Shown: positions 31,821 to 63,179 of the stretch, in pieces | How positions within the stretch are numbered: the first letter of the stretch is position 1 | How the letters are laid out: every line of letters begins with the position of its first letter | From: Haliotis rufescens | Lineage: Eukaryota | Assembly: GCF_023055435.1 (NCBI RefSeq) | Contig: NW_025963779.1 | Location: forward strand, 35,712,001 to 35,776,000 | DNA length: 64,000 nucleotides | Direction of reading: 5' to 3' | Made by a program: the position numbers and the translations under genes | Notes under the pieces: generated by a model | Told to the model about the DNA's origin: nothing | Database searches by the model: none | What the model saw: only the letters and a program-made list of their open reading frames with translations

Positions 31821-34800
31821 CTAGGAGGAAGGGACAGAGGAAAAACGGGATCGTTGGACCTTCGGCTGTGGCGCCCTCTGTCCGTATTCTACCCAGGAGC
31901 CCTGCAATATATAATGACAGATGTTTGATTTACATACTCATACTCGTCCTCAAACGGGTTTCATTTCATGATTAAAAAAATAAGTCTCTTTGGCTTCCCA
32001 CCGAATATGGAAACAAATGACAGTAAGATATATCCTTATGTTTTAGGTTTGTCATAACCATACACCTGCTCGTGTGATTTACCAAAGTGGTAAACATTTG
32101 AGACCTGCATCACTTCGGGCTTTCCTCCCACATTAAGCTGACACGCCAGTGACTTAGTACTGTTCAAAGCTACGTTAAACCCATCTCATCACTCACTGAT
32201 ACAGGACAGCATCACAGAGAGGTGATGCTGTATGTGTAATCAAGCTGTACTATTGTTACGTGGGTGCCGGTGGCGGATCCTGTTCTCGACAGTATACACT
32301 TACATGGTACACCGACACGTCTCCGAGTCCGCATTCACTGGCGGCCAAGGCGAAGATACAGGCTGTCAGACCGACGTAACACGATGCTATGATGGGCTGC
32401 TTCAGTTTCACGCCTTGTTTCTGGAACACTGACCACAGAAACACATAACCAGATATTAGGTTCTCAGTACTGAACACAACCTTACAACAAAAATACCTGC
32501 TAGGCAGACACATAATGTGCTCCCATCTCCCTTAGCTGCGGGAGGCGGCGTTGTAGAACCATACTCACCCACTTGCCCTTGTTACCGTATCTCCTCAGCC
32601 GTTCACTGTTTAATATCAGCCTTTTCATATTGTCCGTTTGAAATGTCTGCCAATATGGGTAGTAGGACTTACAGCGCGCACTTCTATATATCTAATTTGC
32701 TACAAATAATAGAGAGTGAGTAAGTGAGTATGGTTTTACGCCGCTTTTAGCAATATTCCAGCAATATCACCGCGGGGGACACCAGAAATGGGCTTCACAC
32801 ATTGTACCCATGTCGGGAATCAAACCCGGGGCTTCGGCGTGACGAGCTAACGCTTTAACCACTAGGCTACCCGACCGCCCCTGCTACAAATAATAAAATA
32901 TTGTGATAATCTACAAACGAATGTCTTCTTTATTCACTTCCAAAATCGATATTTTTACATCGAAAGTTTTGAATAAGAATTCCAAATTGGAATAAGAAAT
33001 CGATCGTGGTTTGAAGGAGGTCGTCATCGTGTTTTCCAAAACCGTTTTTCGTCCTTGATCTGTTATACTTATTCAAAGCTTCAGAAAGCTTACAGTTTGT
33101 CCGAACTGAGTTAAGTTTCTTAAGTTGCTAGGATCATCCGATCGTAGGTTCGAATCCCAGATACGCAGAGATTCTGTTTCTTGATCTATGGCAATCCTAC
33201 CCTTGAGTTTGACATAAATAGGAAAGATATCTGCGACCTTCGGAATACAGTTACGCGCCACGTATGAGTTAAATATGGTCCTTGTCAGCGTTAAACCTTT
33301 ACTCACTCACTCACATACATTAAAGAAGTACTATACCGCCCGACGAGTGAAACACGTACATGCAGTCAGATCCTCTTTGGTCTTGAATGTGACACCATCT
33401 TCTTGGTACATGGAAGGATAGGGGACACTCACAGCTCCTGGTATGTGACCTGTTTGTAGGTCAAGGCCTTCCTTCTTCATGCTAAGGGCGGGCATAAACG
33501 CCTGCAGGACTGTACGACAAAGTGACGAAAACAATACCGTTAACAGGTTACATAGACGATAAAGTATTGAAACAGAATGGTTTTGTGAAGTCACGATTTT
33601 CAGTAAGTATCTCGATCGTTAATAAAACCGAACGTATGTTTATGGATGTCCCTTTAGGCATTAAAATACGTTATTCTTATTCCTAACAATATAAAATGTC
33701 CACTGTCGTCGAAAGACAATTAACGTCGCTTGTGTTTAAATCGTCCCTCGGAACAACCGCCATTTGGCAATCTGACAGCTCGTTACGGGTCGCCGTGCAA
33801 AGGGTAGATAACTCTTAATGAGTGAGTATGGTTTTGCGCCGCATTTAGCAATATTCCAGCAATATAACGGCGGGGGACACCAGAAATGGGCTTCACACAT
33901 TGTACCAATGTCGAGTATCGAACCCGGGTCTTCGTCGTGACGAGCGAACGCTTTAACCACTAGGCTACCCGATCGCCCCAACTCTTAATGAAAAGGACAG
34001 CGAACTTGCAATACATGAAGGTATGACGATAACGTGACCTGCATCTCTACCCTATATTTGTGGCATTGCTCTGCATCTGAATGCTTGACCTACATGTGAA
34101 TGCTTGAGTGGATGTTGTTTCACGCCGCACATGGTCGCTATACTCCAGCTACATCGCGGCGGCTTGTAAATATTTGAGTCTGGGCAAAGCAAACCAATGG
34201 TCGATCGTATGAGCAACAACCCACGCCGTCAGGGTATGAATACGTACTTTCAGTTATACCCCACCTAATCTGCCCCGGATTTGAACCAGCCTGCTACATA
34301 ACATACATTTTTACTATACATCTTTTGATTAGGTTGTATTTCCATATCTGAGACTGCAAGCTGTTTTGATCTGACAGTAAGGCTTCAATTGTATTCTGGA
34401 GGCAAGGCCGTAGTAAACTGTTTCTATAAAAAAAATCCAAGGGAAGCAACTGCCCCCCCCCCCCCCCCCCCCCCCCCACACACACACACGCGCACTGGGA
34501 GGAAGTTACTCACACAGAGATGGCTCCTGCTCCTCGCCGGCGAAGTTTTCTGGAGGTCTTGTGTCCACCAGTTGTTTATCAGCGGAGGTCATGATGTCAT
34601 TGTAGGACGCCAGTAAACCTTTATCTATTGTTACAGTCACATCTCCATTCTGATGGGAAAATAGTGAGAAGAATGCAGTGGATAGATAGATGGGTGGATG
34701 GATGGATGGATGGATGGATGAGTAATGTGGTGGACAGCCAGCCAGAGAGATCATCTTCATTTTCTCAAAAGGGCTGACGATATATTGATAATAAATATAA

Positions 34801-36681
34801 TTGTATTTTACAGTTACATGATGTGGGGCATATGGTTTGTACACTGTACAGGTAATGCATCTTCCCGAGGCAAGAGAGTTAACTGACTCAATAATCAATA
34901 TTTATATTGTGATAAAACGGGTCTTACATCGCGAAATGCGTCAAATCACGTGAGAACCTTGATTAAAAACATGAAAAGATTTGGAAAATATCTGTTGACA
35001 ACGAGTTGGCGGTGCACAGTTTTGCAAATCCTGCAATCGACCGAAATATGCACGACAGTTTACGAACCGGACTATGCATAGAGGTTACACACAACCAAAT
35101 GTTTTCCCATAGACTTCTTTAGTAACGTTATATTTAAAAAGAATTTAACTAAGCATTCAACAGCTATCACCTGTACGTGTGTGCACAGTTTGGCCTTAGA
35201 GCAGCAATAGAAACATAAAAAATGACTAGCTTAGTCAGCTCCTTTTCCGAGTACAGGAAGCTAAACACACCACCCACAGTTTCGCAACAAATGTCACCTA
35301 CTTGAAAATAGCTGTGGTCACATTCAGCATAAGTGATCATGTTGAAAAAGACAGTACTAAATATAGAAAAACATGGTCAGTTTTAATAACTGGATGGATG
35401 TACATTTGAAAGACATAAAAATCTTACAGAATATCCTCCAATCACAGCCTGCAGATATCTCTCGATCTGCACTGAAGGCAAGAAAACCGCACTGTCCCAA
35501 CTGGTTCTGATTTGGTGTAGTAGAACCTAGACCCGTTAGTCCAGCCAAAATGTAACTCCATAATTCCAGCTTAGTTCGGCAAGGGTGGAAACTAGACTTT
35601 TATAGTCAGTTAACTCTCTTGCCTCGGGAAGATGAAGGCAATGTCACAGCGTTATCATAGAAAGCTATTAACGTTTTTTTCCACAATTGAAATGTTTTAC
35701 ATACAAGAAGCATTATATTAATCCACAAATTGTGTAGAGTTACCTGATGGTAAATTTTGCGTTGATACAAGAAACATTTAATTCCCGTCGGTACATTTAC
35801 ATTCGACGTCATTGCGATGCAATATATAGTTTAATTATGTTTAGTCTACACCAGATCGATCTACTCTACATCGCAGGCAGTAAGGGGACAGTAGGGGATA
35901 GCAGAACTCAACCTCCCTCTTCCCTCACCGCACCCTCTTCAAAATAACAGAAACCCTATATACACTCATTCACTCATTGACTCACTCACTCACTGACACA
36001 TGCATACAATGAATGTATGTATATTACATAAATATGCCATCCCTACCCAACCCACCAGTTGAGAAAGTGGTTCCACGCTATCCCTAAGTCCTGGGTCCAC
36101 CCCAGAAGCGTGAAGTCCCCTACCTGATGTTGTGTTGTCTTATCAGACACAGGGTACCCTTCAGACCGCCAGCGCTTCAGACCGCCGTCTAGGACTGATA
36201 CGTTCCGTATCCCATACGCCTGGACAGGCAGAGAGAAAGTGAGAGTACATATTGCTTCAGACCGCCGTCTAGGACTGATACGTTCCGTATCCCATACGCC
36301 TGGACAGGCAGATAGAGAGAGTGAGAGTACATATTGCTTCGGACCACCGTCTAGGACTGATACGTTCCGTATCCAATACGCCTGGACAGGCAGATAGAGA
36401 GAGTGAGAGTACATATTGCTTCGGACCACCGTCTAGGACTGATACGTTCCGTATCCCATACGCCTGGACAGGCAGATAGAGAGAGTGAGAGTACATATTG
36501 CTTCGGACCACCGTCTAGGACTGATACGTTCCGTATCCCATACGCCTGGACAGGCAGATAGAGAGAGTGAGAGTACATATTGCTTCGGACCACCGTCTAG
36601 GACTGATACGTTCCGTATCCCATACGCCTGGACAGGCAGAGAGAGAGAGAGAGAGAGAATGAGAGTACATATTGCTTCGGA

Positions 36682-36747
<66 letters not shown>

Positions 36748-39700
36748 CTAAATAAATATTTCCAGAGTAGAAATTGCATTACGCCGCGTCAGCAGTTTTA
36801 CAGCCATTCGCGGCGATGAACATAAAATAAACATTTACAACATATAGTGTACACAGTTCACAGAAAATCACAGAAATTACTCATCTTTCTCTATCAAACA
36901 TGTTACAATACAGGGCCAAGTTCCACAAAGGTATCTTATCTCGAAAACTAAACTAGAGACCCAAGAGAACCTATACCCATGAGCTGATTTTATCATATGT
37001 TTGATTTTTCAGTTGAAAATATCTTATAGTTGGCGATATTATATTAAAAAGGTAGGGATCATGAATATTTTGGCGGATTATGCAGTGATTGAGCACACAA
37101 TTTAATAAAAAATATCCCCCCAAATCTCCATGACCCCTGTAACGTTTGGTCAGTATATATGGCCGGTTGTGTTGATAGAACTGCAGGACAGAAAGTCACC
37201 GATCTTCTCATGTAATAATCATTCTGCCGAAGATAACAATTTACTGAAATAAATAAATAAAAATCTGCTCTGAATCAATGTATTTATTTCATTATATTTA
37301 TTTATTATTTAATGAAGTGTATTGCCGCGATCGATGTTATTATTTTTAGACAGTATCAGTGGCTGTAACCCCAAACCCTTTTCATGGTCATTCCTTTTGA
37401 CACATAACTTATTTAATCGAAATAGTCAGTGTACTTATTAAAGATAAATGGTTTTGGAACTGGAGGTATTAAGGTTTCCGCGATATTCTTTAATATACAC
37501 ATTCTTTAATATACACTCGCAAAATCAGAAACAGGGAGCCATTTAAAGACTTAGTTAGACTGACTGTTAAAACGTTATCGTTGAGTGAATCTTATCTATG
37601 TAATATCGATCAGTAGATGTCGGGCAATAAAAGAGATTAGTCAGATCGTAAACAATATTTACTCGCAACATCCACCATGCTCTTGGCGCGGCAAACCCAT
37701 GAAGGTCCGTGTTTTCATACAGAATCACATGACTGGATGTATTAATCCCGAGAGATCTCGCGTAATCTTGAAATTCCGCCGGATCTGGTACATTCACTGG
37801 CAGGTGTTTTGTTGGCGTTGTGCTTTTGAACAAGTTCAAGAACTGGGCACCGTCTATATGGGCACTGAAACAGAGAAATGGAGTATTAGGGACAACGCTA
37901 AGAGAGTGGGAAGTAATATATTTCAGTAAGTGTGTCGTCTTGTATTGTTACAGAATAAAACATATCATGAACCGTATCGTCACATGAAAACACATAATGG
38001 CCCGGTGCACTGATGTATTGTTACACCCCTAGTCAACAGATACTTTTTGTTTGAATTTTTTCATTTTTCAAATTTCAAAGATAGAGAAGATCAGGCAAAT
38101 AAACGTAAAGGTTTGCAAGGTTTTTCTTCTGACAATGTCAACTTTTCAGGGGTTTTATATGTTAAGTCAATACCTAACAGCTCTAATCTTCATATTTGTA
38201 TCCTGAAATGTCTTCAGCAACCCATTCTTGCCACAGAAGGCGAATAGGCGTAAGAGGCGACTAACCGGATCAGGTGGTCAGGCTGGCTAGGCTGGCTGAC
38301 TTGGTTGATGCATATCATCGTGTTCCAGTTGTGTGGATTGAAGCTCATGATGTCAATCACTGGATTGTCTGGTCCGGATTTGATTATTTACAGACCGCCG
38401 TGTGTCCGAAATAATTGCCTGTCCGTGTCTGGCAGATTATTTAAAGACTACTTACGTTTCAGTTTTATCATAACTCCTCGTAGATTTTCAAGTAATTGCT
38501 TGCTTTATTTCAGCTGAATCTAGATGAGAATTGCCTCCTTGTTTTTTTTGCGAATTTTCAATATTTATAATATCTGAATGCGTGCAGGTAACTTTGAAGA
38601 TGGACAGACAGCATTTATGGGTCACCTGTCCGACTGCCATGTTGATTTTTAAAATTATTTCAAACACTGGTATGAAAGCCATATGTTTCTGAAAACTGAT
38701 GCTCTACGGTAGAAGTCGTACCTATAGTAAGCAAATTCATGTACATGCACAGTGTTATTAATTTCGTGTTCCTCTAATAGGTATCTCAAGAACCAGTTAC
38801 AATTGTACCAGATGTGGTACGGAATAAAATTTGGTCCCCCCTAAATTTAATTATTTTTGAATAATATCCACAATGAACGTCAATCTCGACGTTACACTCA
38901 ACATTAAGGTCAAGTTGTCGTTTCCATGTCAAGTTGTTTACACGCTTCTGATTGGTTGGATTTGACGTAATCACTTTCATGTATTCACCCACCAATTAGG
39001 ATTTGCAGCACATTTTGATAATTGTGTTCTGATATTGATTAGTAACACTTATTATTAAATATGTTTATAAGGATTGACTATTACTTTTTGGTTCATTGAG
39101 TTATGAATTGAAAATTGATATATAAATACTTGTAATAATGTGGGATAAAGTTATCAAATCAACAGCTTTTATTTTCAACCTAGAAAACGGTTTTATAATT
39201 CACAGTAATCAACTGATATATCTATTCATGATTGTCTTACAAGGTACATGGAAATATTGTTTGTATTGTGATAACTTGTCATGAAAGGTGTAAGAAGTCT
39301 CGCATCACACCGCATTATAGTAGTAATTGAGATATAAATGTAACACTTTGAACTAACCTTGTTCAGTGCATTTAAAGGTGCAGGTAACGTATTCTTTCCC
39401 TGCTTTGTTATACAAGGTTCATACAGGCTTGAAAAAACCTTGAATTTTGTGGTTCCTCTTGAAAAGTCTTGATTTTTAGTGTCAATCTTGAAAAGCCTTG
39501 AAAATCACCAATCCACGTTCTTTATGACTCAACGGATATGTTTAACACATCAGGGAAGCGGAGAAAAAACAAGATTCGTTCTTGTTCTATTCCAAGGCAA
39601 AAATCCATCTTTCATGAACCTTTTTGTGTCTTTATGCCTAATATATCCACAATTAACAAAAATATGTAATACATGTATCTACAAAAAATATATGTACAGG

Positions 39701-40172
39701 CTTTTCAACCTAGAGAACGGTTTTATAATTCAGTTATCAACTGATATATCTATTCATGATTGTCTTACAAGGTACATGGAAATATTGTTTGTATTTTGTT
39801 CAGGCTAGGTATTAGCCCACAGCAACACCTGCATAACTGTTTTTTCACGCGTGGTGTGGCAGAATAATAAAACGGGAGCAGGCATTGTAGACGCACCTGT
39901 AAATTAGGCCGACTCTGTAACTAGATATCCGCGGATTATTCGCAATATTTTGCAGAACACGATAACAAAATTTTGCGTTGTAGTGTACAGCGTACAATTG
40001 AGCCACATGAGATACACGGATCATTTCCCAATGTTTATAAATTATCCTTACCTTTTGAGTCTTCGTCACCTAAACCATTGATTGTAATAGTTGTGTCAAA
40101 TACTCTCAACTCTGGAGCACGCTTTTCCAATTGGTTTGCCAGCCATTTGGGAGTCACGAGAGGTGTCGCCAT
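31821..40172 (-). CDS. Two-domain rhodanese / TST-MPST-family sulfurtransferase, paralog A; exons 40172-40052, 37864-37663, 36219-36124, 34649-34514, 33509-33360, 32428-32304, 31901-31821
   Basis: Manual splicing, all introns GT..AG. Motifs LVTPKWL, HIDGAQF, RAWWMLR, VSVLDGGL, VDTR, GHIPGAV, SCYVGLTAC, YHGSWVEY. Internal exon sizes 202/96/136/150/125 are identical to paralog B. Exon 1 is 121 nt, 1 nt short of the phase required. Confidence 0.9.
32712..32881 (-). mobile_element. SINE family A
   Basis: Near-identical to the 63452 copy; TSD tgctacaaataata. Confidence 0.9.
33820..33980 (-). mobile_element. SINE family A
   Basis: Same consensus; TSD aactcttaatga. Confidence 0.9.
34858..35634. 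mobile_element. MITE family E with an internal deletion and foreign insert
   Basis: Same TIRs; TSD caggtaatg / aaggcaatg. Partial copies at 31122-31490 and 55028-55057. Confidence 0.82.
36175..36690. repeat. 80-82-bp tandem repeat (6 copies) of an intron/exon junction of paralog A
   Basis: Acceptor AG recurs at 36220, 36300, 36382, 36464, 36546, 36628. Confidence 0.95.
38200..38400 (+). mobile_element. SINE-like family B, partial
   Basis: gtcttcagcaaccc...gtaagaggcgactaa...ggattgtctggtcc. Confidence 0.75.
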
Positions 40173-40479
40173 ATTCTCGTTTGACCTGAGGTGACCTGAT
40201 AGACGCACATGTCTTCCGTCATGAATGGATCACCTAATCTCGACGAGGAATGTACCCTGCCATACAAGGCGTTCATTTATGGTAACAGCTCTCTTGCCGA
40301 ACGGGGACTTGGCAGTTGTGTCAGAGTAAGTTGAACCTGTTCTCATTTGTAGTTCCTTACATAATGTGAGACTTTACACTCCAATCGTAAGCGCAAGTAC
40401 TATGCTTACTTCCCCCTCTCTTTTTCGAAATATTTCACAAATATAAATACTAATAATGACACAACATCGGGTACACATT

Positions 40480-42060
40480 ACTATTAAATGTCCGATCCAA
40501 ACAATCCAACAAATTTATTAAAGTGACTGCCATGTCTGTCCTCAGTGTGGATGTCAATGGATGTGTTCAAAAGCGACGCAACAGCAACTATTTCAACATC
40601 GGTTGCCCAAACAGAATTTTTCTGCATTTCACTTTCAACAAAGTAGAGGTTAATGTCTTCATGGCCAGAGTAGTTTTCAAAATGACTTTTGTACCTGTCA
40701 TCTTGTAGGAGATCTACAACATGATGTCTGATGTTCGTATCCTTCAGTTCCTGTCACTTCTTTTGATATAGCTCTAAATAGGTAGTTGGCATCACCTTGG
40801 ACAACATCAACTTCTGTAGGTTCGCTAAGAATCAGTCCCGGAGTTCTCTGTGATGTCACACCTCTTGATGTTGGAAGGCCAAGTTTCTGACTCTGGAATC
40901 GTCTCCACTCTTTGTCAGTTGGCCGAAATTCTTGGCCTGAGGTTTCTACAGAGCTTATAACGACATCATCCCTGTCAACATTCGTAGGGTCGTCGTTCGA
41001 GGATGTTAGTGTGGGGCTGCTGTTTGAAGTTGAGCATGGCTGAATATCATCTTGCAGACGGTCTGGCTGAATATCATCTTGCAGACGGTCTCTGTACAGT
41101 TTCAGGTTGCATCCGTTCATCTTAGATTTTGGAATAGTGGACGTCTTGGGGTTCTTCAACTCAAAGAGTCATTTGCCAATGCTTCGGTTAATGATGAATG
41201 GCCCATTCCATGCATCAACATGTTTGCCTCCTTTCCTATATGCACGAAGAGTGTTCCACACTAACACTTGATCACCTTCGGTGAGGATCTTCTTTGAAGA
41301 ATGTCTTGCGTTGTAGTCTCTTTTCTGGCGCTTTTGTGCAGCTCTTATGTTGCTGCTGGCTTTGGGATACACAACATTCTGCAGACTGTCAAACGAGGAT
41401 ACTCTGGCTTTCAGTGATGCACTATCAAAGTCTGCTACAGAACTCTTCATTACCTTCTCTTCAACAGGTTCACGTCTAATGTCTACAGGAAGCACAGCGT
41501 CCCTCCCATACATCAGAAAAAACGCACTGAACCTCTGTCAGTTGGTATTAAAGGCAAACCGAACTCCAGGTAGCGCTTGTGGCCATTCTTCTTGATGCCC
41601 TTCCAGTGTCTTCAACAAAGATCGCTGAATTGTCTGATTATTTCTCTCAACGAGTTTATTGGCCTGGGTATAATAGGCACTGGTTATTCGTTGCACTGTT
41701 CCAGTCAGTCCGTGCAGCTCATGTGAAACTTGGTTCACAAATTCACGACCTTGATCGTTAATCTGGATACTTGGTATTCCATGGCCGGAGATAGTTTCAT
41801 ACAGGAAGGTTGCAACACTTGCAGCAGTTTTGTCTTTCAGGGGCTTAGCTTCTATCCACTTGGTTAAGTAGTCAACTGAGACAAGATGCAGCAGAATCAT
41901 TCATCAGTAGTTGGCAGAGAGTAGAGAGCTACACCGACTTGTTTCCAAGGATTGAATCGAGTTCAGGTGATGATTTATGAAATTTCGTACTGGATCTCTG
42001 GCATCTGTCACATGTGGATACATGTAACCTCACATCTTCCACCAAAATCTGAAACCAAAA
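40480..42060 (-). mobile_element. Degenerate Gypsy-like integrase fused to an OTU-like protease (Ginger1-type DNA transposon relic)
   Basis: CDRC zinc motif, VDYLTKWIEA, DQGREFVN, SAY..QAN..VER, WNGPF, then GDANYLFRAIS and WATDVEI (OTU-like). Several frameshifts; no RT or gag seen nearby. Confidence 0.7.
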
Positions 42061-42657
42061 GCAATATTTAGAGATTGTATACAGTGATTGTACACTGAAA
42101 ACATGTCCAATAAGCATGGGATAAGTTAATTAATTATCATCAAATCAAGTAATGAATTATGGTATATGCAAAAATACGTTAGGTAAATGTTATGGAGTAA
42201 GGATTTATTACAGACAGATTCATTTTGATATTTATTTTTAGTAGTATTCTGCTCAAAGGAATACTTTTCCATGTCTTGTCAGGTTTGCATGACACACGTT
42301 CTGGTACAGCTGTACTTGTCCTTAGATTGAATACTGCTGGGGAACATGTTCATACAGATGCTCCAGAAATAATGTTTTAGTTTTTGTCACTTTCAGACAG
42401 ACATCAGTTTACTTCATATTTAACAGATTTTGTCAAAATATGAGACAATGTTTTTGTTTTTTTATTTTTAAAGAAAATATTTTTATCATTAATACCTTCA
42501 TGTTAAAAAGTGTCTGTGTTCAAGATTACATTAAAGGAAGGATTTAGAAATTCAATATAAATTTGCTCACGTGAGGCACTGTCTTCATCAGCTGATGAAC
42601 GCCAACAAATACAACTTCAATCCTTATTTTGACAGATACATAACTCATAACAAAACT

Positions 42658-44458: not shown

Positions 44459-44459
44459 A

Positions 44460-49780: not shown

Positions 49781-52470
49781 TATCGTCAAGTCACACAAGT
49801 TCGATCGACATGTAACTTCGATCGGCCATTTTGAATGATATTTCTCGCGAAATGTAACGAGAAATTACGGTACCTGCAGCTTTGATCTTCTGACAACACC
49901 GCTTTCGTTCGCTTGGACCGGAAAATGCTTCGTGTCAAGTTACCAAACGTAAGTAATAGCTCATATTCAGCAAACAACTACTTTTTAACCCGAGATCACT
50001 AATGTAACTTGATCAGCTCAAATAAAATGTCAATTGTAATAAATGCACACGTTGTAAATCGACGGCACACCTGTCGTCTGCTTGTTTACGTTCATGGTGT
50101 AAATGTCACGTGATGAGACACGTGATGTGCTCGCCAAAATTTAAAACTATGGAAACAAATTAGGGTCATTTCTTATTGAAATTGTTATGCTTTTTGAGAA
50201 CTTCTGTCTCTGGAGTTTTGGTGTTATATAAAATAAACCTTTATTTTTACAGGTTTTGACCAATGGTGAACCAACCAGAAGAGGTCAATATAGGCAATAT
50301 TTGTCTGCAGCCCTAGACAAGGCATATAATGCTGTTTTAGATGGAATGGCAATTAGGAAAGCTGCCACTACCTTTGCTGTTCCATTTGCTACACTGCATG
50401 ACAGGATGAGTGGGAAGGTTTCTATTGAATGTAGTACCACTGGTAGAGAACCACTATTGTCCATGGAAGAAGAACAGGGACTTGTTTCACATATTGAAGC
50501 CATGGCAAATTTTGGGTATGGCTATACAAGGGCTGAAGTTACTACTATTGCCACAGACCTAGCAATATATGTTGGAAAGAAGTCAAAGGATGAACAACCC
50601 CTATCACTTCAGTGGTTCTATGGGTTTATGAAGCGATGGCCTGATCTGTCAGTGAAGAAGCCACGATCCCTTGAGATACAGAGAGCAAAAGCTACCTCGG
50701 AGGAGACGATCACTCATTATTTTAATGAGCTTGGGCACATCATGGATAAGTACAACCTGAAGACATGCCCTCATCGCATTTATAATGTTGACGAAAAGGG
50801 ACTTATGGAGCATCATACCCCACCATCAGTTGTTACATCGAGTCAGAGTACTCCAGCTGCAGTCACAACATCAAGATCAAGTACTACAACGGTTATAGGT
50901 TGCGGCAATGCGTCTGGTAGTTCTATACCACCGTATTTTGTTTTCAAGGGCAAGAGGATGCGGGAAGAACTCCTTTCAGGAAGTACCCCTGGAGCAGCAG
51001 GCACTGTAAGCGACTCTGGCTGGTCAAATACGGAGATTTTTCAGCACTATCTGACAGAGCATTTCCTGAAGCATGCTGTCGCCGCGTCTGCAGATAGTCC
51101 ACTTCTTATTGTGTATGATGGTCATAGATCCCACGTATCTATTCCACTCATCGAATGGGCACGTCAACATCACATTATTTTGTTTGTACTGCCTGCACAC
51201 ACGTCCCATGTTTTACAGCCAATGGATGTTGGTTGCTTTGGACCTTTTGCTAAAATTTACAACAACCTCCGTCATACGTATATGCGGGAAAATGCCACAA
51301 GTTCAGTTGATAAACATTCTGTTTGTGAACTTGGCTGTAGAGCTTATAACCTGTCGCTGACACCAACAAATCTGCAATCCTCTTTCAGGAAATGTGGAGT
51401 CTATCCATTTGACAAGTCTTCCACCGCCAATATCAACTTTGCGCCATCAACAGTTTTTAAGTCGACTGAACCTTTGCTGCATCCTGATACTGGTTTTATT
51501 GATTCATGTGTGCCAGTTGGAGACAAGGTTGTCACTTCACCTACTGAGGGCAATGATGTAGCAGGATTCTTTAAAGACAAGACGACTGTACTTTTCAAGA
51601 AAGCTGTGCCTACTAAAAAGAGAAACGTTCTGAGCGCTGTTGTCGGGGGCAAGGCCATCACCGAAGACGTCATTCTGAATAAAATTATTTCCCACCAGAC
51701 TGTGAAATCGGCACCCAAAAAAAGAAAGCAAGCACCTAAACCAAGTAAATCTTTAAAAAAAAAAAATACTGTCACTGCAACGAATGCAAGTACTGGAACT
51801 TCACGGTCCAACGCGCATCAGGACGATAGTTTTGATAGTGATGTGACAAGTGATGACGAACAGTGCTGCAAATGTAGCAAATTTGTACCTGATGAGGTTC
51901 GAGCTAATGTCTCCCTGATCATAACAACCTGGGCACAATGTACCCACCCTACATGTCAGCACTGGACACATTTACGTTTCTGCACGCCAGTTCGTGTTGT
52001 GCGTCGACATTCTGAGTTTTGGTGCCCCTGTCACGATGAGCCTGAAGAATAACTCCCTGCATCAACCTTGTAAATAATCTGGATATTTGTGACTTTTCAT
52101 CGTTTTTTTTTCAATATTAAAACATAAAATGAACGTTTGATGGACAAAGATGTAATAAAACAACTGCGGACTGTTCTAATTCGAATTTTGACACAAGAGA
52201 TCGTCCATACATGTCATCTCGGTTATGCGACAAGCCAACCAATCAAATGATCGAACTTGTGTGACGTAGCTTTCTGGGTCATTTCTGTTGACAGTGAGAG
52301 GGCGGCCATGCCGCGAGTGTAAATTTCAATGGAAATACGTGGATTTGGGAAATGTTTGTCATAAATAAACAAGTTCACAGGTAAGATATTTGAAAAAAAG
52401 ATTATATGAATGTTACTATGAATATTCAGCGAGTTTTCGTAAGTGATCGAACTTCCATGACACGAGGATA
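49781..52470 (+). mobile_element. Full-length pogo-like DNA transposon (~2.7 kb)
   Basis: Imperfect inverted ends tatcgtcaagtcacacaagttcgatc (49781-49806) and gatcgaacttccatgacacgaggata (52445-52470), 20/26 identity, TA at both ends. An extra internal copy gatcgaacttgtgtgac lies near 52250. Confidence 0.75.
49925..52052 (+). CDS. Pogo-family (DD35D) transposase, spliced: exons 49925-49948 and 50253-52052 (~607 aa)
   Basis: Psq-type HTH (IRKAATTFAVPFATLHDR), CENP-B-type HTH, catalytic YNVDEKG / VYDGHRSH / QPMD with 35 aa between D2 and D3, and a C-terminal Cys/His PHD-like finger. ATG-MLRVKLPN|GTAAGT donor and tttttacAG|GTT acceptor are in frame. Confidence 0.88.
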
Positions 52471-53992
52471 CTGAGTCAAATTAAAAACTTCACATTTTTA
52501 AAAGTAATCCCATATATGATATACAACGGGCAAATGTATCAGAGAAGGTATTTTTTAATCATTAATGTCCAAAGAAGGATTTTAATTAACGGTGGTAACC
52601 ATAATTTGTTCCAAGCACCTACGGTATTCGGCAATAACATCAACAGTTTAAATCATAAGTCCCAAGAACGAGAATCTGATGGTACACAAGTTCAGTGGCG
52701 TGTATGGCCACAATGTGCGTTGACAACTGCCACACAACGCCTCCGCATGGACATTGTGATGCTTGTGAACACATGATTGGGAAGACGACGCCATTGTTGC
52801 TGCAAAATGGTGCCAAGATCTTGTAAATTCTGTGGTTGGTTCTGGAGAGTGCACAGACTTCTGCCAAGAGCATCCCAGACGTGTTCGATGGGATTAAGGT
52901 CGGGAGACCTTGACGGCCAGTCCATGACGTTGACTCCTGCATTCTGAAGGAAATTCCTTGTCAAAATTGCTGTGTGGGGGGTCTGGCATTGTCGTGTTGG
53001 AAGATCAAACCGGGTCCATGTGCTGCCATAAAAGGCAGAAGTTCTGGTGCCAATACCTGGTCGCGGTAAGCAGCAGCGTTGAGTTTGCCACGGATGACAA
53101 GAAGCCTGGAACGTGCATTGCCACAGAAAGCACCCCACACCATGACACTTCCGCCTCGAAATCTGTCAACTTCCTGTACTAAGCACTTGGCGTAACGTTG
53201 ATGACGGCGCCTCCACACCCTCGCCCCACCATCAGCAAATCGAAGATTAAATCGTGATTCATCACTGAAGACGACTTGATTCCAATTCCTCTGAGTCCAT
53301 CGTAAGTGTCGCTATGCCCACAATTGACGTTGACGTCTGTGTAATTGAGTCAGAATCGGCCCGCAGTATGGCCGTTGTGCTTGAAGGTGAGCAGTTCTCA
53401 GACGGTTTCGAACAGTTTGCGCATTCAGTCTACCCCTAAACAGTTCATTTCTGGTTGATGTAGCCGTCAAAAATCGGTTACGGAGGTGACGCAAGACAAT
53501 TTGACGATCCTCTGCATGTGACGTCACACGTGGTCGACCTGGCCGAGGGCGATCAGCGGTGGTACCCGTTTGCTGTAGATGCGTCTGTAAATCATATACA
53601 GTCCGTCGACTACAACCCATCGTCCTTGCGCCTTCAGCTACGGACGTTCACGTCTGCAACATGCCGATGGCACGTTCACGTTGCACATTTGAAAGGCGTG
53701 GCATGACAAATGACCGTAAAGACTTTTGTTTTTCTTTTTTTGTTAATGACTGCTAACAAGTATGACTGAAAACACGTGCGGTATTATGGCCACGTGACCA
53801 GTTGCACGTGAAAAACCACTTTTACCACTATAGTGCTGTGCACATGATTTTGATCGATTCACCTGCACAAAAACGGGTGTTATATGAAGACAATACGTGG
53901 CCATTACTGTTTAAATACACAATAAGGGCCCACAATGATAACTGGTCAAAATCTTAAAATTTTAGGATTGTGAAGATTTTATTTTGGTTCAG
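52471..53992 (-). mobile_element. Tc1-like (DD34E) transposon with TIRs
   Basis: TIRs ctgagtcaaattaaaaacttcaca / tgtgaagattttattttggttcag, flanked by TA, enclosing the transposase pseudogene. Confidence 0.85.
52692..53704 (-). pseudogene. Tc1 transposase pseudogene
   Basis: MPRLS..AIGML, GRPRVT, VFSDESRF, GGSVMVWG, FQHDNARP, WPSRSPDLNPIEHVW. Two in-frame stops and one frameshift near 52980. Confidence 0.9.
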
Positions 53993-53994
53993 TA

Positions 53995-54640: not shown

Positions 54641-54956
54641 AGCGCTAAGGTGACCGTAACTCCCATACTTTAACATAGACTTACGACAGTCACAGCGCTA
54701 AGGTGACCGTAACTCCCATACTTTAACATAGACTTACGACAGTCACAGCGCTAAAGTTACCGTCACTCCCATACTTTAACATAGACTTACGATTGCCACA
54801 GCGCTATGGTGACCGTAACTCCCATACTTTAACATAGACTTACGATTGTCACAGCGCTAAGGTGACCGTAACACCCATACTTTAACATACACTTACGACT
54901 GTCACAGCGCTAAGGTGACCGTAACCCCCATACTTTAACACAGACTTACGACTGTC
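54641..54956. repeat. 53-bp minisatellite, 6 copies, inside MITE-like ends
   Basis: Unit agcgctaaggtgaccgtaactcccatactttaacatagacttacgacagtcac. Confidence 0.92.
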
Positions 54957-55553
54957 GAATCGATACGATCGCTTTGCGGTACGGTGCCCTGTATTTTGAC
55001 TGTAATAATGTTGAACATGGATGTAGCATCTTCCCGAGGCAAGTGAGTTAACTGACTGTACCACAAAGATCAAAGCAATAAGTCCCAAGCTCTGGGCAGA
55101 TAGGTTCCCTGGTCACGGTTCATGGCTGGCTGGTGTCGCCTGATGTCAATGGCTTGTTGTAGTTTTCTTAGTGATGAACAAATAGTTTTAGCTTCCTCAG
55201 TAAAAGCACATGGAGAGAGAAAGACTTTTTTAGAATATTAGAACTTTATTTATGTTCTTTTTCCATTCCTTATTGTAACTGATCATGAGAATTACTTTAA
55301 TATCGCTTTGTGCAAGTGGGCCCAGACTATCTATAGGTCGCCTTGACATAGCTGGAATTGCCGACTGTGGCTTAAAACAACTTTCACCAATTTTCTTATT
55401 ATCCATAACACTTAATAGGATCAGTAGCATCTGTAACTATATCAATGGCAATTAAACACGAACCTCACCATATAGGTATTTTAGGCTGTAATAACCTACG
55501 TAGCTGAAATATCAGAACCGATGTAAAACATAACGTGTATCTACTTAATATGT

Positions 55554-55744
55554 TAAGTAAGGATAAGAATTAATGGAATTTACTTCTTTATTACAATTAA
55601 GAGCGACGTTTCGGTGTAGGTTCACTTGCTTGATTACGGCGTTACAACCTACACCGAAACGTCGCTCTTAATTGTAATAAAGAAGTTGTTTATCCATAAA
55701 TTCTTATCCTTACTTAGTACTCCGACTTCTAAATGCCTAGAAGT
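55554..55744. repeat. Inverted repeat, Penelope pseudo-LTR-like insertion
   Basis: Perfect 41-bp arms at 55582-55622 / 55646-55686 containing ccgaaacgtcg..aataaa; 14-bp direct repeat tacttaatatgtta on both flanks. Confidence 0.7.
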
Positions 55745-55914
55745 TACTTAATATGTTACTGTTCATCAATGTCTTATGGAATGTTGTTAATATTCATTTG
55801 AAAATGTTAAAACATGAGTCCCCTCTATGTACATCTTCAATGGCTGACAACGCTGCAGCAGCAGCAGCAGCGTATGAAGATGAGGAGAGGATGCACCTGC
55901 CACAGGCTCCGTAT

Positions 55915-57679
55915 TCAATGCTTGCACTCCACACTGCCGACTGAAGCTCTTTGTCCGTACTCAGTCCAGGAACCCTATGAAGGATACGAAAATATGTTTA
56001 TATAATGTATTAAGATGAAGCTTTAGATAATAGTGAAAAGTGAGCCATGCACTGAATAAATATAAGAAAGAATGGAGGTCATCACGTGAGTGTTTGGGAA
56101 TGTTAAATATCCTGTATTAGGAATAAACATTGTATTTAGCGAGCCTTAATAACTTCTTTATCATGTCATGTCATTTTTCAATTCTGTGCTTGAAAATCTC
56201 TTCTCATCTCTAACAAACATTACCTAAACATTGCAAGTTTTCCCGGAATGTGCGCATTAATATATATATATATATATTACTAATATATTACTATTATATT
56301 ACTATAAAGCTTGACCTTTGATATTTGTATCTCGGTCTGCATGACCCCAACAGGTATTGTTTTTATCCGTTGGCTTTATCCTGCCGAGAAACCTCCCCGT
56401 TACTAGTATATGATAAACTAATTTTTGTATAGTTGACAGTAAAGAGGACTTCCTTTGAAAATCTGAGTTAGTTTAGTGTGATTGCAGCCAAAATACAGGA
56501 ACTTGGAAATGATGTAACAGAGGTAGTATTCTTAGAATTATAACAATGATAACTATTGTTTTATAACGATGCATGTATGAAGATTTGGCTGTTATGTGAC
56601 GTGGAACCCTATTTCCTACAGACACTTATAGTCACTTATGTACCCGAAACACCTAAAGGCGTTTGTAAGTTGCATAATATATGTTTATCCAAGAATCAAG
56701 AAAACAATAAACAAGATAACGACGTTATTGAAGGCGTAGTGAAGCGTTTCAGTTGCGTTATATAATATTTACATTTTACTCTATGAATTTCCAAGAGAAA
56801 ACATTTATCAAACGTGAAATGTCATGAATTTCCGAAATTGCCTCTGTCGAGAAATTGCACGAAGCACAACATGGAACGTGAACGTGAACGTTGCCAAGTA
56901 ACCGATGGCTGAATAAGCCAGCCAGTTAGCTGTAGACGCTCGACTGACGACACTATACGCGGATTAGAATGAATGCGTGGTATGACCTCAAAGGACGTCA
57001 CTTAGGATTAAAACCCTATCGACCCACTTTGGGTAATTAGGGCGAGTTTTACCACACGTCAGGAACGATTTTAATATTGATACAACAAGCGAAATAAATA
57101 TCCAGCAGTATGATCTACAAAGTATGTGGTTTACTCACATAGTAGACACTGACGTCATCCTTCCCACAGACACAGGCGGCCAGGGCGAGGATGCAGGCGG
57201 TGAAGCCGATGAAACATGTTGACGTCATGGGTTGGTCCAGCTTGACCCCAGCAGACTGAAACACTGGACCACGGCATCATAATATCAGCTGCATGGAATC
57301 AAGAGACCGAAATTTAAATGTGGTAGGGTTTCGCGATCTGATTGGTTAAGCACGATGTTAAATGGGTTTTGAAGTTCGGTAACCTTCTGGACTTAGAACA
57401 CTTTTCTCTCTCTACAGGACCGCCTTCGTGGTCTAGTGGTAGAGCGTCCGCCCTGAGAGCGGAAGGCCCGGGGTTCGATCCCCGGCCGCATCATACCAAA
57501 AGACGTTAAAAGATGGTTGTTGTTACCCTGTCTGGCGCTCGGCATTATGGGGCTTAAACAAGGACTGGTCGGCTCGGAATCAGTATACTGTATCTGAGTG
57601 GGGTATTCATGTTAAACTGCGGCATGGTATCTCAGTGTGCTAGCACTAAATCGGCATCAATCCGGACTAGTACAAGCAG

Positions 57680-57712
<33 letters not shown>

Positions 57713-60700
57713 CACGTCTTGGACGCGAAGTTAAACCCCATTTCACCCACCTCTCTCTACCATCAAGCAAGACCAAGATGATGTTTGTGGTCGCAATGCC
57801 CAATAACAATGACATCCACAAATCTGCAAGCACATAATATTAGTTGTAACACTGACGGCAAGTCCTGTTATTCTGGTGGTAATGATTCCGGTCAAATTAA
57901 ACTACGAGTGTAATGTTCTTGCTATGGTAACTCACTTTGGAGAAGCTCGTCTTTCCCTTTAAAGGTAATTGCGTCGTCCTCGAACAGGGTGGGGTAGGGG
58001 ATATTGACGGCTCCGGGAATGTGTCCGGTCTGAAACGCCAGGCCATCAGATTTCAGTCCCAGAAAGCCCATACAGTAGGTTTGGACTGTTTCAGAAAAGA
58101 GATTTGATGAGTTTCCATGGGCAGAACAGGTCTCGATTATCCCGCCCCTGTCGTAAAACCCAAGTTATGTTTGTTTGTTGTTTAACGCCGCATTCAGCAA
58201 TATTACAATATTACTTTATGAAGGGTCATGTAAATAATCGAGGCTGCACAAGACAATCGAGCGATCGAACAACGATCCACGACGTCGGGGTACTATGACA
58301 TGCAATCAACCAAGTAACTGGCCACCCGATCCATGTACTCGCATCTTGCAGTCAGCATATATTGGTCATGATCCGGGTATTGGGGATCGGATGGCTACAA
58401 TGCTGACATCCTGGCTGGTTGTATGTGGTAGATGTTAATGCTATCAACTCCTGCTCTACCATGAGCAGACTTGAATGTGTGGAAGAGCCATCTTGGTATA
58501 CAGCTGGAATATTGCTGATTCCTAAACTAACAGCCTCTCACTCCTCAGTATGAATCTGAGGATCCGATGACATCCCTTTACGGGTCACGTCAGAACGACC
58601 TTTCATCCGAACAATCATAGCGTCGCTTACCAGATCAGGAACGCGACAATCAGAATGTGTTTTCTATTCATGCAACCGCGACAACGTTAACACTGGATAT
58701 TCCGAACGACAGTTACCGTAAGCATCATATCTCGCTTAGATGGGATAAGCTTTTGAAAAAAGAGACTTTCAATAGCCCGCGTGAATCGCTGCCAAACAAT
58801 CTCGGTCATCTATTAGACATTCCAGAATGTTCTTTTGTCCATTTTTCAAATTTTGTTTCGTGTCGACTCCATGTTAGTCATTTCATTGGTCGGTCAAAGT
58901 TCGCGATAATTCGTTCTTACGTGACCTGTAATGGGATGTCTTCAGGTCTTTGTTTAGCGGTAGCGAGAACTAAGAACTAATTTGAATGAGATTGCTCACT
59001 ATTCTTGAAAAAGTCCGTTTGAACATCTGGATAATATTAACGACAACATCTTCAACAAAAATGGTTATACGTTTTATTGTTAACAATGAGGCCCGTGAAG
59101 ATCCGGGGTAGAATAGGTCTTCACCAACTCATGCTTGCCGTAAAAGGCGACTATGCTTGTCGTAAGAGGCGACTAACGGGATCAGGTGGTCAGGCTCGCT
59201 GACTTGGTTGATGCATGTCATCGATCCCAATTGCGTGGATCGATGCTCATGATATCAATCACTGGATTGTCTGGTCCAGACTCGATTATTTACAGACCGC
59301 CGTTATATAGCTGGAATATTGCTAAGTGCAGCGCTAAACACAAACCAAACAACAACCTGAACGATCTGTACGTGCCTTCAAGGCTATTTGATTGAGATTT
59401 TCAAGATCTCAATCTTCACAAAATGCAGGGAAGTCTTTTCTATTCCGATTCATTGATGGGCATTAGGGTACCTACATTTTGAAGGCTCTTTTTCTTTGCC
59501 ATTAAAGTTGTCGGGGTGCCGTGTGTCCACGAACTGTCGCCCATCTCCGGGTTTGATGTCATCATAGAGCATCACCAGGCTTTTGTTAACCTTGACCGTC
59601 ACGTCACCTTTCTGGGGAATATGATAAATATATTCTGAATTCGACAAATATCACTTCTTTCAGATCTCATATCACAATAAACATGTGTGTGTGAGTGAGT
59701 GTGTGTGGTATATGTGTGTTTCTGTGATTGAATGTGTGTGTGAATGACACGCAACAATATATCCAAGCTATATGACGACCGTCTGTAAATAATAGTCAGA
59801 ACCAGACAATCCAGTGATTCATATCATGAGCAGTCGGGGTACGTCGACACGCAATCAAACAGGTCACCGAGTCTGATCAGCCGAACCATGACGTCACCTG
59901 TTACGATCAGCATAGGCTGCTACTGACCTGTTCTAACCCGGAAACCCCACAGGTAATTTTTTACAGGTGCGTGTGTGCTTGGGCACTTTTGTGTGTACGT
60001 GTAGATTTGCCGTTATGTTGTCTGAGATAGCACCCACCTCATACTCGACCTGCTTATCTGTGACTGGGTGACCCTCCTTCTTCCATCTGACCAGTCCCCC
60101 ACTCAACACGGATACGTTCGTTATTCCGTGAACCTGTGGGGACCATGAAGTGAGTGGGTGAATGTAGTTTGGTGCCGCAGTTATTTCAGGTACGTCACGT
60201 TATCATTAAATAATCGAGTCTATGCCTTGATACATCAACTGTAAACATGAGCAATTACAACAAAATCCACACAAAAAGGCATGTGACACATAACCACCAA
60301 GCCTGACAGCCGTTCTAACTCAATTGGAATGCTGAAGTGCTTTGTTAACCAGGGTCTCCGTGTGGGTTTATTTATTTGTCGTTCAACGCCGCACTCAGGA
60401 ATATTCCAGCTATATGACGGCGATCTGTAAATAATTGAGACTGGATCAGACAATCCAGTGATTGACATCATGAGCATCGATATACGCCATTGGGATACGA
60501 TGACATGCATCATCCAAGTCAGCGAGCATGACCACCCGATTCCGTTAGTCGCCGACAAGCATGGGTCGTTGAAGACCTACTCTAACCCGTATGTTCACGG
60601 GGAGTCTCTGTGAGTGACCGGGCTTGGAAGAAGTCAATGTAATAATGGGAGAATAATACGTTACTCTTAGCAGCCACCATCCTCGACATGCTTTAGATCC

Positions 60701-61309
60701 GTTTTGATCGACGTTTTCGTACAGGATGACGTGACTAGATGCGTTGATGCCGAGAGATCTCACGTAATCTTGGAAATCTGTGGGATCTGGTAGCCCCAAA
60801 GGGAGGTATTGAGTGAAGGGGGCATTCTTTTTTAAGTTGAAAAACTGTGCTCCTTGTACATGTTCACTGAAAAGTATTGAAAATGAATAAATTGTGTGAA
60901 AGTAAATGATCAATGTCACAGAATATATGCATGCATACACGTTGCAGCAATAAAACATTAATTATTCAATTTAAGCTCCATCTAAAGACCATTATAAATG
61001 TCGCGGTTTGTTTCTGCTACACATAACCTTATCTTTCTGAAAAGAAACCTCAACAAATCTAAAGTAATATTCATGGCCGATTTTAATCGGAAACATTACT
61101 GAAACAACCCTTTGGTCGCACCTCCAAAACGCAACCTGGGCCCTACGTGACCTAACACAATTACATGCAACATGAAAACATTCTTACCTTTTAAAATCGT
61201 CTGTAGATGGACCAGCTGGTCCAATGGTTGTATCAAAAATTCTTAAATCTTTGTTTCCGACTTTTATTTGACTTGAGAGCCATTCCGGCGTCACCACTGG
61301 GGAGGCCAT
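55915..61309 (-). CDS. Two-domain rhodanese / TST-MPST-family sulfurtransferase, paralog B (296 aa); exons 61309-61188, 60866-60665, 60133-60038, 59611-59476, 58085-57936, 57263-57139, 55974-55915
   Basis: Seven exons splice in frame (891 nt) with GT..AG sites. MASPVVTPEWL, HVQGAQF, RGWWLLR, VSVLSGGL, VDTR, GHIPGAVNIP, TCFIGFTAC, YYGSWTEY, ending in TGA. Confidence 0.92.
57418..57745 (+). mobile_element. tRNA-derived SINE family D
   Basis: A box tggtctagtggta, B box ggttcgatccc, core ataccaaaagacgttaaa...ggactggtcggctc, internal (CA)n. Other copies at ~15040-15215, ~19890-20075, ~62436-62570. Confidence 0.85.
59092..59355 (+). mobile_element. SINE-like family B (Nin-domain-like, no tRNA head)
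   Basis: Starts cccgtgaagatccggggtagaatagg, contains ttgtcgtaagaggcgactaa, ends gctggaatattgct...aaac repeats. Confidence 0.85.
60365..60601 (-). mobile_element. SINE-like family B
   Basis: Consensus match. More diverged copies lie at ~58170-58350 and ~59750-59950. Confidence 0.8.
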
Positions 61310-62091
61310 GCTCCCCGCGCTCGCACCTAACAGGCCAAGAGTGAAAGATGCCGACAGCGCCTCTCGAAATAATCTCGGTCAGTAGGTCAAAACACAGGGC
61401 CATGCACTGGACCATGTAACTAATGATAATAATAACAAGCACCTCGCAGACGAGGCCGAAGGCATGTACACCATGTAACTAAAAGTCAATACGAACAAAT
61501 TCGCAGACGACCTCGAAAGCAAGTTTGTCAGCATTGCCTATTAGTTAATGACCCTGTGGTGAAAATCGCTCGCCTATTGAATCTGGATAATGGGCTGTAC
61601 AAGTAATCTGCATAAATGCATGTGTTTGGGTGTTTGCGAATATCTGTAGTAAAGGCATGTGAGGCTAGTTAAGTTAAACTCGGTGAAACGAGACATAAGT
61701 TTGCAGGGCTCACTAATACCACCGATGCGCTTACTTCGACGAGCAATTTGTGTCAGTGGCGGTTGCTGTCGGTAGGGCAGGACACGCTTGCTCTTTTCGC
61801 GAACACCTGGTGTCATCACTGAATTTCATATCATTAATCACTGATCCATTCATATAATTTTCACCGCTATTTCGCCTTTGACACCCGATGGAATGTGTTC
61901 CGCTGGATTACCAAGACTGGTTATTCTCCAGCGCTGACATATTATATTTACCAGTGATTGATATTATGAACAACTACGCCGGCCGTCGAGATACGATGAC
62001 ACATAATGGACTAAGTTCCCGAGTCTGAGCACCAGATGCATATACGACTATTCTAACACGGATCTCCACGTGGAGGAACAGCAAGCGCCCC

Positions 62092-62310
62092 CAGGGTAGA
62101 ATAGGCAACCCATGCTTGTCGTAAGAGGCGACTGATGGGGTCGGGTGGTCAGGCTCGCTGACTTGGTTGATGCATGTCATCGTATTCCAGTTGCGTAGAA
62201 AGATGCTCATGATGTCAATCACTGGATTGTTTGGTCAAAACATGATTATTTACAGACCGCCGTCATATAGCTGGAATATTGCTGAGTGTGGCGTAAAACA
62301 ACAAACAAAC
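62092..62310 (+). mobile_element. SINE-like family B
   Basis: Consensus match with (caaa)n tail. Confidence 0.85.
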
Positions 62311-63125
62311 ATCAGAGATATATCTTTAGTCATTCCTCGATGCATTCCGACACAGACGTCATCCGTAATGGGATGTCCTCAGATCTTTGATTAGCGGTAG
62401 TGAAAACCAAGTTATGATTTTAATGAGACTTACTCCGAGCCGAATATTCCTTGTTTTAGTCCCTTTATGCCGAGCGCCGGGCAGGGTAGCAACAAGTACC
62501 ATGTTTTAACGTCTTTTGGTATGACGCGGCAGGGGATAGAATCCCGGACCTTCCACTCCCCGGGCGGACACGATACACAGAGACAACAACACATGAAAAT
62601 GTGAACCTACGTTTATTTCAACTTGAACTGAAGCCGGTAATACGTCAGTTCAATTAAAATAACTCACACTAAAGTGCCGAGCAACAGAACGTATACACAC
62701 ATATTTATCCGTTTGTCTAAAAATGAAACAAAAAAGAAATGTTTATTCGATGGTGATGTATTTGACACAAGTTACATAGTCAATATTGGATCCTAAGATT
62801 ATAGTGTTTCGGCGACTGTTTTCAGCCTAGTAACGTTTTGATAACGTTTGTACTGTTTTGGTCAAATCCAATTTTCAAGTGTATTCTTTCTTTTGCCAGA
62901 CAGTTTATATTCGTATTACAGCAATCAGTGTGTTCCAACCTGAACAGAATGTTCCTGTCAAATGTTGAGTCGTATGGTTCATACCACGCTTAAATGACTG
63001 CTATTTAGGACTCTGGAATTACTTTAATTGTAGTTGATGTTACGTGACATCATGCAGCAGCAGCAGATACCAGGGTCTTTCACAAACGAGGAAGGACCGT
63101 GTTGTCACTGGGTACGTTTTGAAAG

Positions 63126-63179
63126 CTAGCACTCCACGCTGGCGTCAGGTGCTCTTTGTCCGTACTCAGTCCAGGAACC
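63126..63179 (-). CDS. Terminal exon of a third sulfurtransferase paralog (C); upstream exons lie beyond the window end
   Basis: ctttcaag acceptor, then GSWTEYGQRAPDASVEC*. Nearly identical in nucleotide sequence to exon 7 of paralog B. Confidence 0.85.
   Translation of the reverse strand, partial: GSWTEYGQRAPDASVEC

Follow-up and report, generated by a model that had tools for sequence, protein, structure and literature searches.

A head-to-tail array of tandem-domain rhodanese genes in Haliotis rufescens, from a separate invertebrate clade with a proposed change of sulfur donor or acceptor preference

The closest described systems to the genes considered here are the sulfurtransferases TST and MPST. 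In MPST, the carboxylate of 3-mercaptopyruvate is bound by R188 and R197, and the roles of these arginines and of R186, the TST equivalent of R188, are known from the rat and human enzymes. In TST, the cationic residues of the catalytic loop CRKGVT bind the negative charges of the substrate, and the R248G/K249S variant has a Km for thiosulfate ~17-fold higher and a kcat 6-fold lower (PMC9369223). The threonine at the end of the loop is essential, T253V being inactive (PMC8533005), and SQR, ETHE1 and TST form the mollusc sulfide detoxification set (PMC10638732). Here, an array of rhodanese genes from the abalone Haliotis rufescens was analyzed. The window, i.e., the whole stretch of DNA that was analyzed, is 64 kb of contig NW_025963779.1 (assembly GCF_023055435.1, positions 35,712,001 to 35,776,000 of the forward strand).

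An exon-wise search of the H. rufescens genome (1.33 Gb, in which the window is C1:35712001-35776000) returned four tandem matches, genes A, B, C and D, within 47 kb of contig C1, and three dispersed paralogs, one copy each on contigs C223, C57 and C201. Genes A to D form a head-to-tail array, all on the minus strand of one H. rufescens chromosome, and in database protein records the paralogs share one contig or chromosome in each Haliotis species. The window holds two complete seven-exon, two-domain rhodanese genes, A (31821-40172) and B (55915-61309), and only the final exon of gene C (63126-63179, minus strand, GSWTEYGQRAPDASVEC followed by a stop), exons 1 to 6 of which lie past the window end; gene D is just outside. 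Searching the window by tblastn with pieces of rhodanese-like open reading frames (ORFs) gave two collinear minus-strand sets, corresponding to A and B, and a motif scan located three terminal exons of the GSW.EYGQRA type, at 31901, 55974 and 63179. A third complete paralog was sought in the window by tblastn to E=50, and only noise was obtained besides A, B and the terminal exon of C. An earlier, sequence-only reading of this DNA had proposed at least three head-to-tail paralogs; there are four on the contig, of which just two are complete inside the window, and the region delimited in that reading ended at 63179 because the terminal exon of gene C ends there.

The products of genes A-D are tandem-domain rhodaneses of the TST/MPST structural family. 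Exons were searched singly, with the database proteins XP_046362580.2, XP_048236395.1 and P0157 standing in for full-length products, and were concatenated for frame checks and substitution counts only. Two PF00581 (Rhodanese) stretches were found in each of the gene C protein (XP_046362580.2), P0157 and P0037; the single exons gave weak PF00581 matches only, as expected. The gene C protein matched human TST at E 6e-48 and bovine rhodanese at 1e-46, and the loop cysteine, which is invariant in a 105-sequence alignment, aligned with the catalytic C247 of bovine and human TST. An AlphaFold2 (AF2) model of the same protein (predicted local distance difference test, pLDDT, 96; predicted template-modeling score, pTM, 0.93) was matched by Foldseek to TST and MPST with template-modeling (TM) scores of 0.83-0.87 and an E of 2e-28. 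The best NCBIfam match was NF008557 (MPST), at 167 and 178 bits against a cut-off of 250, for a bacterial model on which shark MPST scores 221. A search of the ESM Atlas with the database protein P0158 returned generic rhodanese clusters.

In a maximum-likelihood tree of 44 sequences, the canonical metazoan group (vertebrate TST and MPST, hemichordates, the nemertean Tubulanus and the gastropod Babylonia; support 97/90) is separate from a second group of invertebrate proteins (support 100/99), which have loops such as CQTGMT, CFTGMT and CNTGLT. The second group contains the CY clade, which consists of five further database sequences and a lineage uniting the chiton Liolophura sinensis with all of the Haliotis proteins (support 100/99), the latter from H. 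rufescens, H. rubra, H. cracherodii and H. asinina. Gene A is the first to branch within Haliotis. For B and for C the tree recovers orthologs in H. asinina, H. rubra and H. cracherodii; for D it recovers one in H. cracherodii, with a further, third protein of H. asinina unresolved next to D. At least the A, B and C lineages therefore predate the divergence of these species, and all four copies probably do. Judged from the signature that the chiton and the five further sequences share with the array, the subfamily is older than abalone. The lineage-specific subfamily of the sequence-only reading is thus distinct in the tree, outside the characterized vertebrate TST/MPST clade, but it is not specific to abalone, since the chiton (loop CYVGYT) and the five further sequences belong to it. 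The dispersed paralogs on C57 and C201 fall in the canonical group and that on C223 falls in the second; as the C223 loop is CLAGLT, non-cationic loops are not confined to the tandem array. The C223 paralog (C223:55214001-55234000) has an intron at the same position after the loop exon as the array genes. Members of the CY clade are already present in databases as predicted proteins named 'thiosulfate sulfurtransferase-like'; a literature search returned no paper on abalone rhodaneses, the CY loop, the clade itself or an assayed mollusc member of it.

The sequence signature of the clade was counted in the 105-sequence alignment, where the CY clade (n=14) was compared with vertebrates (n=8) and with 70 remaining sequences, mostly bacterial or unnamed; the R186 position was located by counting residues along the alignment to TST and was checked against C247. 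Loop position 2 is Tyr in 14 of the 14 CY clade sequences, Gly in all 70 remaining sequences, and Gly or Arg in vertebrates. At the position of bovine TST R186 and human MPST R188 the clade has His or Asn (14/14), against Arg in 69/70 remaining sequences and 8/8 vertebrates, and at the MPST R197 position all 14 have a replacement (Ser, Cys, Thr or Ala), against Arg in 69/70. The spacing between EP and GHI is 21-23 residues in the clade compared with 6 in the others: an insertion of ~16 residues precedes GHIPG and is predicted to include a helix (residues 185-193; block-mean pLDDT 88-93 in the AF2 model). In the array itself, the tyrosine, the loss of both arginines and the insertion are present in all four genes (for B, the RNA has Tyr where the reference has Phe).

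The loop in abalone and chiton has the form C-Y-[V/I]-G-[F/L/Y]-T, with CYVGLT, CFIGFT/CYIGFT, CYIGFT and CYVGFT in the array, and neither the cationic TST loop CRKGVT (R248, K249) nor the MPST loop CG[S/T]GVT occurs in the array genes. Retained throughout the clade are the catalytic Cys, the DxR arginine, the HIxGA histidine and the C-terminal GSW.E[YW] motif, along with the loop Gly in 13/14 and the loop-end Thr in 11/14, all molluscs included. The alignment bears out that loop positions 2-3 keep aromatic and aliphatic residues in diverged paralogs and in different species. The suggestion that these proteins would not be tuned to small anionic donors gains in strength, since the R186/R188 and R197 positions are replaced in 14/14 as well.

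The exon lengths of B, C and D are identical (122/202/96/136/150/125 nt plus a terminal exon), and splice sites in A-D are all GT-AG except for one GC-AG in C. This GC-AG is at the donor of gene C intron 5, where A, B and D have GT-AG, and the model still translates exactly to XP_046362580.2. Gene B is encoded on the minus strand by exon 1 (coding part 61188-61309, ATG at 61309, with a 5' untranslated region that runs past 61350 in RNA contigs), exon 2 (60665-60866, 202 nt), exon 3 (60038-60133, 96 nt), exon 4 (59476-59611, 136 nt), exon 5 (57936-58085, 150 nt, coding for the insertion KFQTYCMGFLGLKSDGL and GHIPG), exon 6 (57139-57263, 125 nt, with the loop at 57216-57199 reading CFIGFT in the assembly) and exon 7 (coding part 55915-55974, GSWTEYGQRASVGSVECKH followed by a stop), exons 4 and 5 being delimited by RNA splice joints. 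The junction of intron 2 was placed from contig alignments ending at the exon 2 boundary, the GT-AG sites and the NCBI model. The joined gene C translation equals XP_046362580.2 of H. rufescens (loop CYIGFT), and that of gene B equals the last 296 residues of XP_048236395.1 once a 2-nt ambiguity at exon 2 is resolved. The latter accession, which NCBI names 'uncharacterized protein LOC124139505' (827 aa), joins gene D, a portion of C and the whole of B by read-through, so that no separate H. rufescens protein record exists for gene B. H. cracherodii isoform X1 extends further upstream in frame; in H. rufescens, a stop 24 codons before the ATG of B rules out such an extension.

Evidence of transcription was obtained from contigs of four public runs (four studies, three organism labels) placed on 55880-61350. 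These contigs skip four introns of gene B, at 55974/57139, 57263/57936, 58085/59476 and 59611/60038, in up to four runs, and all of the skipped introns have CT..AC ends, i.e., GT..AG on the minus strand; one contig additionally joins exon 2 to exon 1 at 60866/61188. Variant contigs were also present that match D at 9/9 listed differences in exon 6 and C at 3/3 listed differences in exon 4. The B-type contigs, together with the variants matching D and C, indicate that B, C and D are all transcribed. Four intronic stretches of B (57344-57709, 58076-58258, 58442-59356 and 60272-60637) reach a summed contig depth of up to ~8e5 in the RNA-like runs; the contigs on them are many, differ by 5-10% and have loose ends, and the stretches look like members of abundant transcribed interspersed repeat families.

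The same contigs bear on the loop of gene B. The assembly encodes CYVGLT in A and CFIGFT in B, as the sequence-only reading had reported, but the Phe of B is not fixed. Base 57212, in the middle of the Phe codon, differs in every B-type RNA contig from the four runs, changing TTC to TAC (Phe to Tyr) and the loop to CYIGFT. These contigs have no other listed difference from B in exon 6, an exon in which 16 sites distinguish C from B and 15 distinguish D from B. CYIGFT is likewise the loop of the B ortholog in H. cracherodii. The CFIGFT of gene B is therefore a reference-only allele or an assembly error.

Genes B, C and D are under purifying selection. The pairwise ratio of nonsynonymous to synonymous substitution rates (dN/dS, or omega) among them is 0.15-0.30 at a dS of 0.35-0.54, and neither the insertion nor any exon reaches a ratio of 1. 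For the insertion and the loop, positive selection was considered and rejected, omega being 0.10-0.56 in the insertion and <0.35 elsewhere bar two exons; these are two short, low-dS exons in the C-D pair, with omega of 0.57 and 0.72. Between gene A and B, C or D, synonymous sites are saturated, and amino-acid identity is 54-55%. Exon 5 (57936-58085 in B, and its equivalents in C and D) has a dS of 0.7-1.2, compared with 0.1-0.6 in the other exons. That exon 5 has the highest dS suggests that the other exons of B, C and D have been partly homogenized by gene conversion. The three genes are outside the characterized clade, are expressed and spliced, and evolve at a dN/dS of 0.15-0.30; the sequence-only reading had named, as what would refute its proposal, nesting in a characterized clade with normal TST/MPST kinetics, or absent expression with dN/dS near 1, and B, C and D show neither.

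Gene A is an early-diverging copy that is frameshifted in this assembly. It is encoded on the minus strand by exon 1 (40052-40172, 121 nt, ATG at 40172), exon 2 (37663-37864, 202 nt), exon 3 (36124-36219, 96 nt), exon 4 (34514-34649, 136 nt), exon 5 (33360-33509, 150 nt, coding for the clade-specific insertion and GHIPG), exon 6 (32304-32428, 125 nt, with the loop CYVGLT at 32381-32364) and exon 7 (31821-31901, GSWVEYGQRAPQ and onward to a stop). The seven-exon structure that had been called identical in A and B is so in its boundaries and in its lengths, with one exception: exon 1 of A lacks a base near its 3' end (GAC-TC-AAA-AG|gt), and alignment with B, C and D, as well as with the ..DEDFKS.. 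of the H. rubra ortholog, shows this base to be a T shortly before the donor. The resulting frameshift leads to a stop four codons into exon 2. Rescue by another start or donor was considered and rejected, as the frame needed to join exon 2 meets stops no more than five codons from the donor. The remaining exons of A (2-7) are open, and A is as close to its H. rubra ortholog (84% identity) as are B (83%) and C (82%), so that the lesion represents either a null allele of recent origin or an error of assembly, and the gene is not an old pseudogene. A protein search returned an H. rubra protein for A and none from H. rufescens, and the reference animal may carry a null allele of gene A. An 82-bp tandem repeat (36174-36655, 5.9 copies, 97% matches) repeats the acceptor and about the first half of gene A exon 3, so that a series of decoy acceptors precedes the genuine exon; beyond the repeat, at 36687-36745, comes a (GA)n run.

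Taken together, it is probable that the array encodes TST/MPST-fold enzymes of a separate invertebrate clade that have kept persulfide chemistry and changed their donor or acceptor preference. The products of A-D would keep ping-pong sulfur transfer through a persulfide on the loop cysteine, and because the catalytic Cys survives together with the Gly and the terminal Thr of the loop, a persulfide-forming enzyme with an altered preference seems likely. Affinity for thiosulfate and 3-mercaptopyruvate should be poor, since no cationic binding residue remains, and another donor or acceptor would probably be preferred, such as an uncharged or bulky persulfide or polysulfide, or a protein thiol. 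The hydrophobic donor or acceptor envisaged in the sequence-only reading would be one possibility, alongside a protein thiol or a neutral persulfide. A bolder formulation can be advanced tentatively: that the CY clade is a functionally new class of tandem rhodanese, which has shed its anion-binding residues, holds an invariant Tyr beside the persulfide Cys under a putative lid-like helix, and gives sulfane sulfur to, or takes it from, partners that are not anionic (such as organic persulfides or polysulfides, a particular protein or hydrophobic thiols), with four subfunctionalized copies in abalone.

Several points weigh against a change of preference. The altered substrate is, for every member of the clade, something that we purely infer, and contact of the inserted helix with the active site is putative. 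Rhodanese loops vary widely, and E. coli GlpE, whose loop CYHGNS also has Tyr at position 2, uses thiosulfate. Loop position 5 is hydrophobic (Val) in the canonical enzymes too. The CY clade as a whole is supported at just 83/85, and because the protein searches were word-indexed and the profile search scored 8000 candidates, its taxonomic range is uncertain. The runs used for expression carry the guessed label 'RNA?', so their RNA nature rests on the splice joints.

The foremost alternative is that these proteins are ordinary sulfide-detoxification rhodaneses using thiosulfate or glutathione persulfide as TST does, with differences that amount to neutral drift in a tolerant loop. The NCBI name 'thiosulfate sulfurtransferase-like' and the retained loop Gly and loop-end Thr agree with this, as do the presence of TST in the mollusc SQR/ETHE1/TST set (PMC10638732) and the wide variation of non-Cys loop residues among active rhodaneses, the loop of E. 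coli GlpE being CYHGNS (PMC8533005). However, drift within a tolerant loop does not readily account for a Tyr in 14/14 sequences, or for arginine losses and an insertion that are clade-wide and maintained at a dN/dS of about 0.2. The R186/R188 position is otherwise Arg in 69 of 70 mostly bacterial or unnamed sequences and 8 of 8 vertebrates, removal of R248 and K249 alone costs 17-fold in Km and 6-fold in kcat (PMC9369223), and the canonical-type paralogs on C57 and C201 could fill the standard role. Because the changes are clade-wide, invariant and selectively maintained, and canonical-type paralogs are present in the same genome, this alternative is weakened and we consider it rather doubtful.

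It is far less likely that the copies are catalytically dead, whether as non-enzymatic rhodanese-fold proteins serving as binding or regulatory modules or as decaying duplicates. Every canonical cationic substrate-binding residue is gone, and gene A is frameshifted in the assembly, with no H. rufescens protein recovered for it; yet the catalytic Cys, loop Gly and loop-end Thr are conserved, B, C and D have intact frames, correct splicing and a dN/dS of 0.15-0.30, and any decay of A, 84% identical to its H. rubra ortholog with exons 2-7 open, would be recent or an assembly error. Least likely is the specific form that the sequence-only reading had offered, an abalone-lineage innovation for dietary organosulfur compounds or specialized metabolites, for although four retained paralogs in a herbivore, an aromatic/aliphatic loop and a predicted amphipathic inserted helix fit it, the clade predates abalone, its signature being common to the chiton and five further sequences, and at least A, B and C, probably all four copies, are older than the Haliotis species split.

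The proposed change of donor or acceptor preference matters because substrate choice in TST and MPST is explained by a few cationic residues, and the conserved, expressed branch described here, which selection maintains, has replaced all of them and gained a predicted helical insertion adjoining the active-site segment. Characterizing one CY member would put the loop-and-arginine rule of specificity to the test, and could reveal mollusc sulfur transfer that SQR, ETHE1 and TST detoxification does not cover. In annotation, a distinct subfamily lies concealed under the name 'thiosulfate sulfurtransferase-like'.

The remainder of the window contains several other features. The spacer between A and B holds an intact plus-strand ORF of 598 aa (50256-52052) for a transposase of the pogo/Tigger type (DDE_1 and HTH_psq), from an element that could still be active or could have been so recently. 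The same spacer also has, at 52692-53620 and 41169-42117, both on the minus strand, a disrupted Tc1/mariner transposase with DDE_3 and HTH_Tnp_Tc3_2 and pieces of integrase-like retroelement ORFs with a weak match to rve. A minisatellite-like array at 26908-27948, with ORFs of 227-346 aa in five reading frames, built on a repeated unit of ~17 residues, sits where the GC content of the window is locally high (0.48). Runs of N occupy 17806-17935 and 19539-19734.

Compared with the known systems, the array proteins resemble mammalian TST (PDB 1RHD, 1BOH and 8AGF) in having two rhodanese domains over ~295 aa, a catalytic Cys in a six-residue loop of the C-terminal domain, the loop Gly and loop-end Thr, the DxR arginine, HIxGA and a GSW.EW-type C-terminus, at 33-34% identity and TM 0.85-0.87. 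They differ from it in having CY[V/I]G[F/L]T in place of CRKGVT, Asn or His in place of R186, ~16 extra residues (a predicted helix) before GHIPG, a separate phylogenetic position and seven coding exons. MPST (PDB 4JGT, 3OLH and 5WQJ; E. coli SseA, 1URH) has the same fold and architecture (TM 0.83-0.84, 30-31% identity), but the abalone loop is not CG[S/T]GVT, and both R188 and R197 are replaced. GlpE shares the Tyr directly after the catalytic Cys, which shows just that an active rhodanese can have Tyr at position 2; it is a single domain of ~108 aa, the rest of its loop is polar and ends in Ser, and it is not a close relative. The TST-like proteins of the second group, from Solemya velum, Mercenaria mercenaria and H. 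rufescens (C223), for which a literature search found no characterization either, are sister lineages in the tree (100/99). They also are without R186/R188 and have non-canonical loops (CQTGMT, CFTGMT, CNTGLT and CLAGLT), but unlike the CY clade they have neither the Tyr nor the insertion, with 1-4 residues between EP and GHI compared with 21-23.

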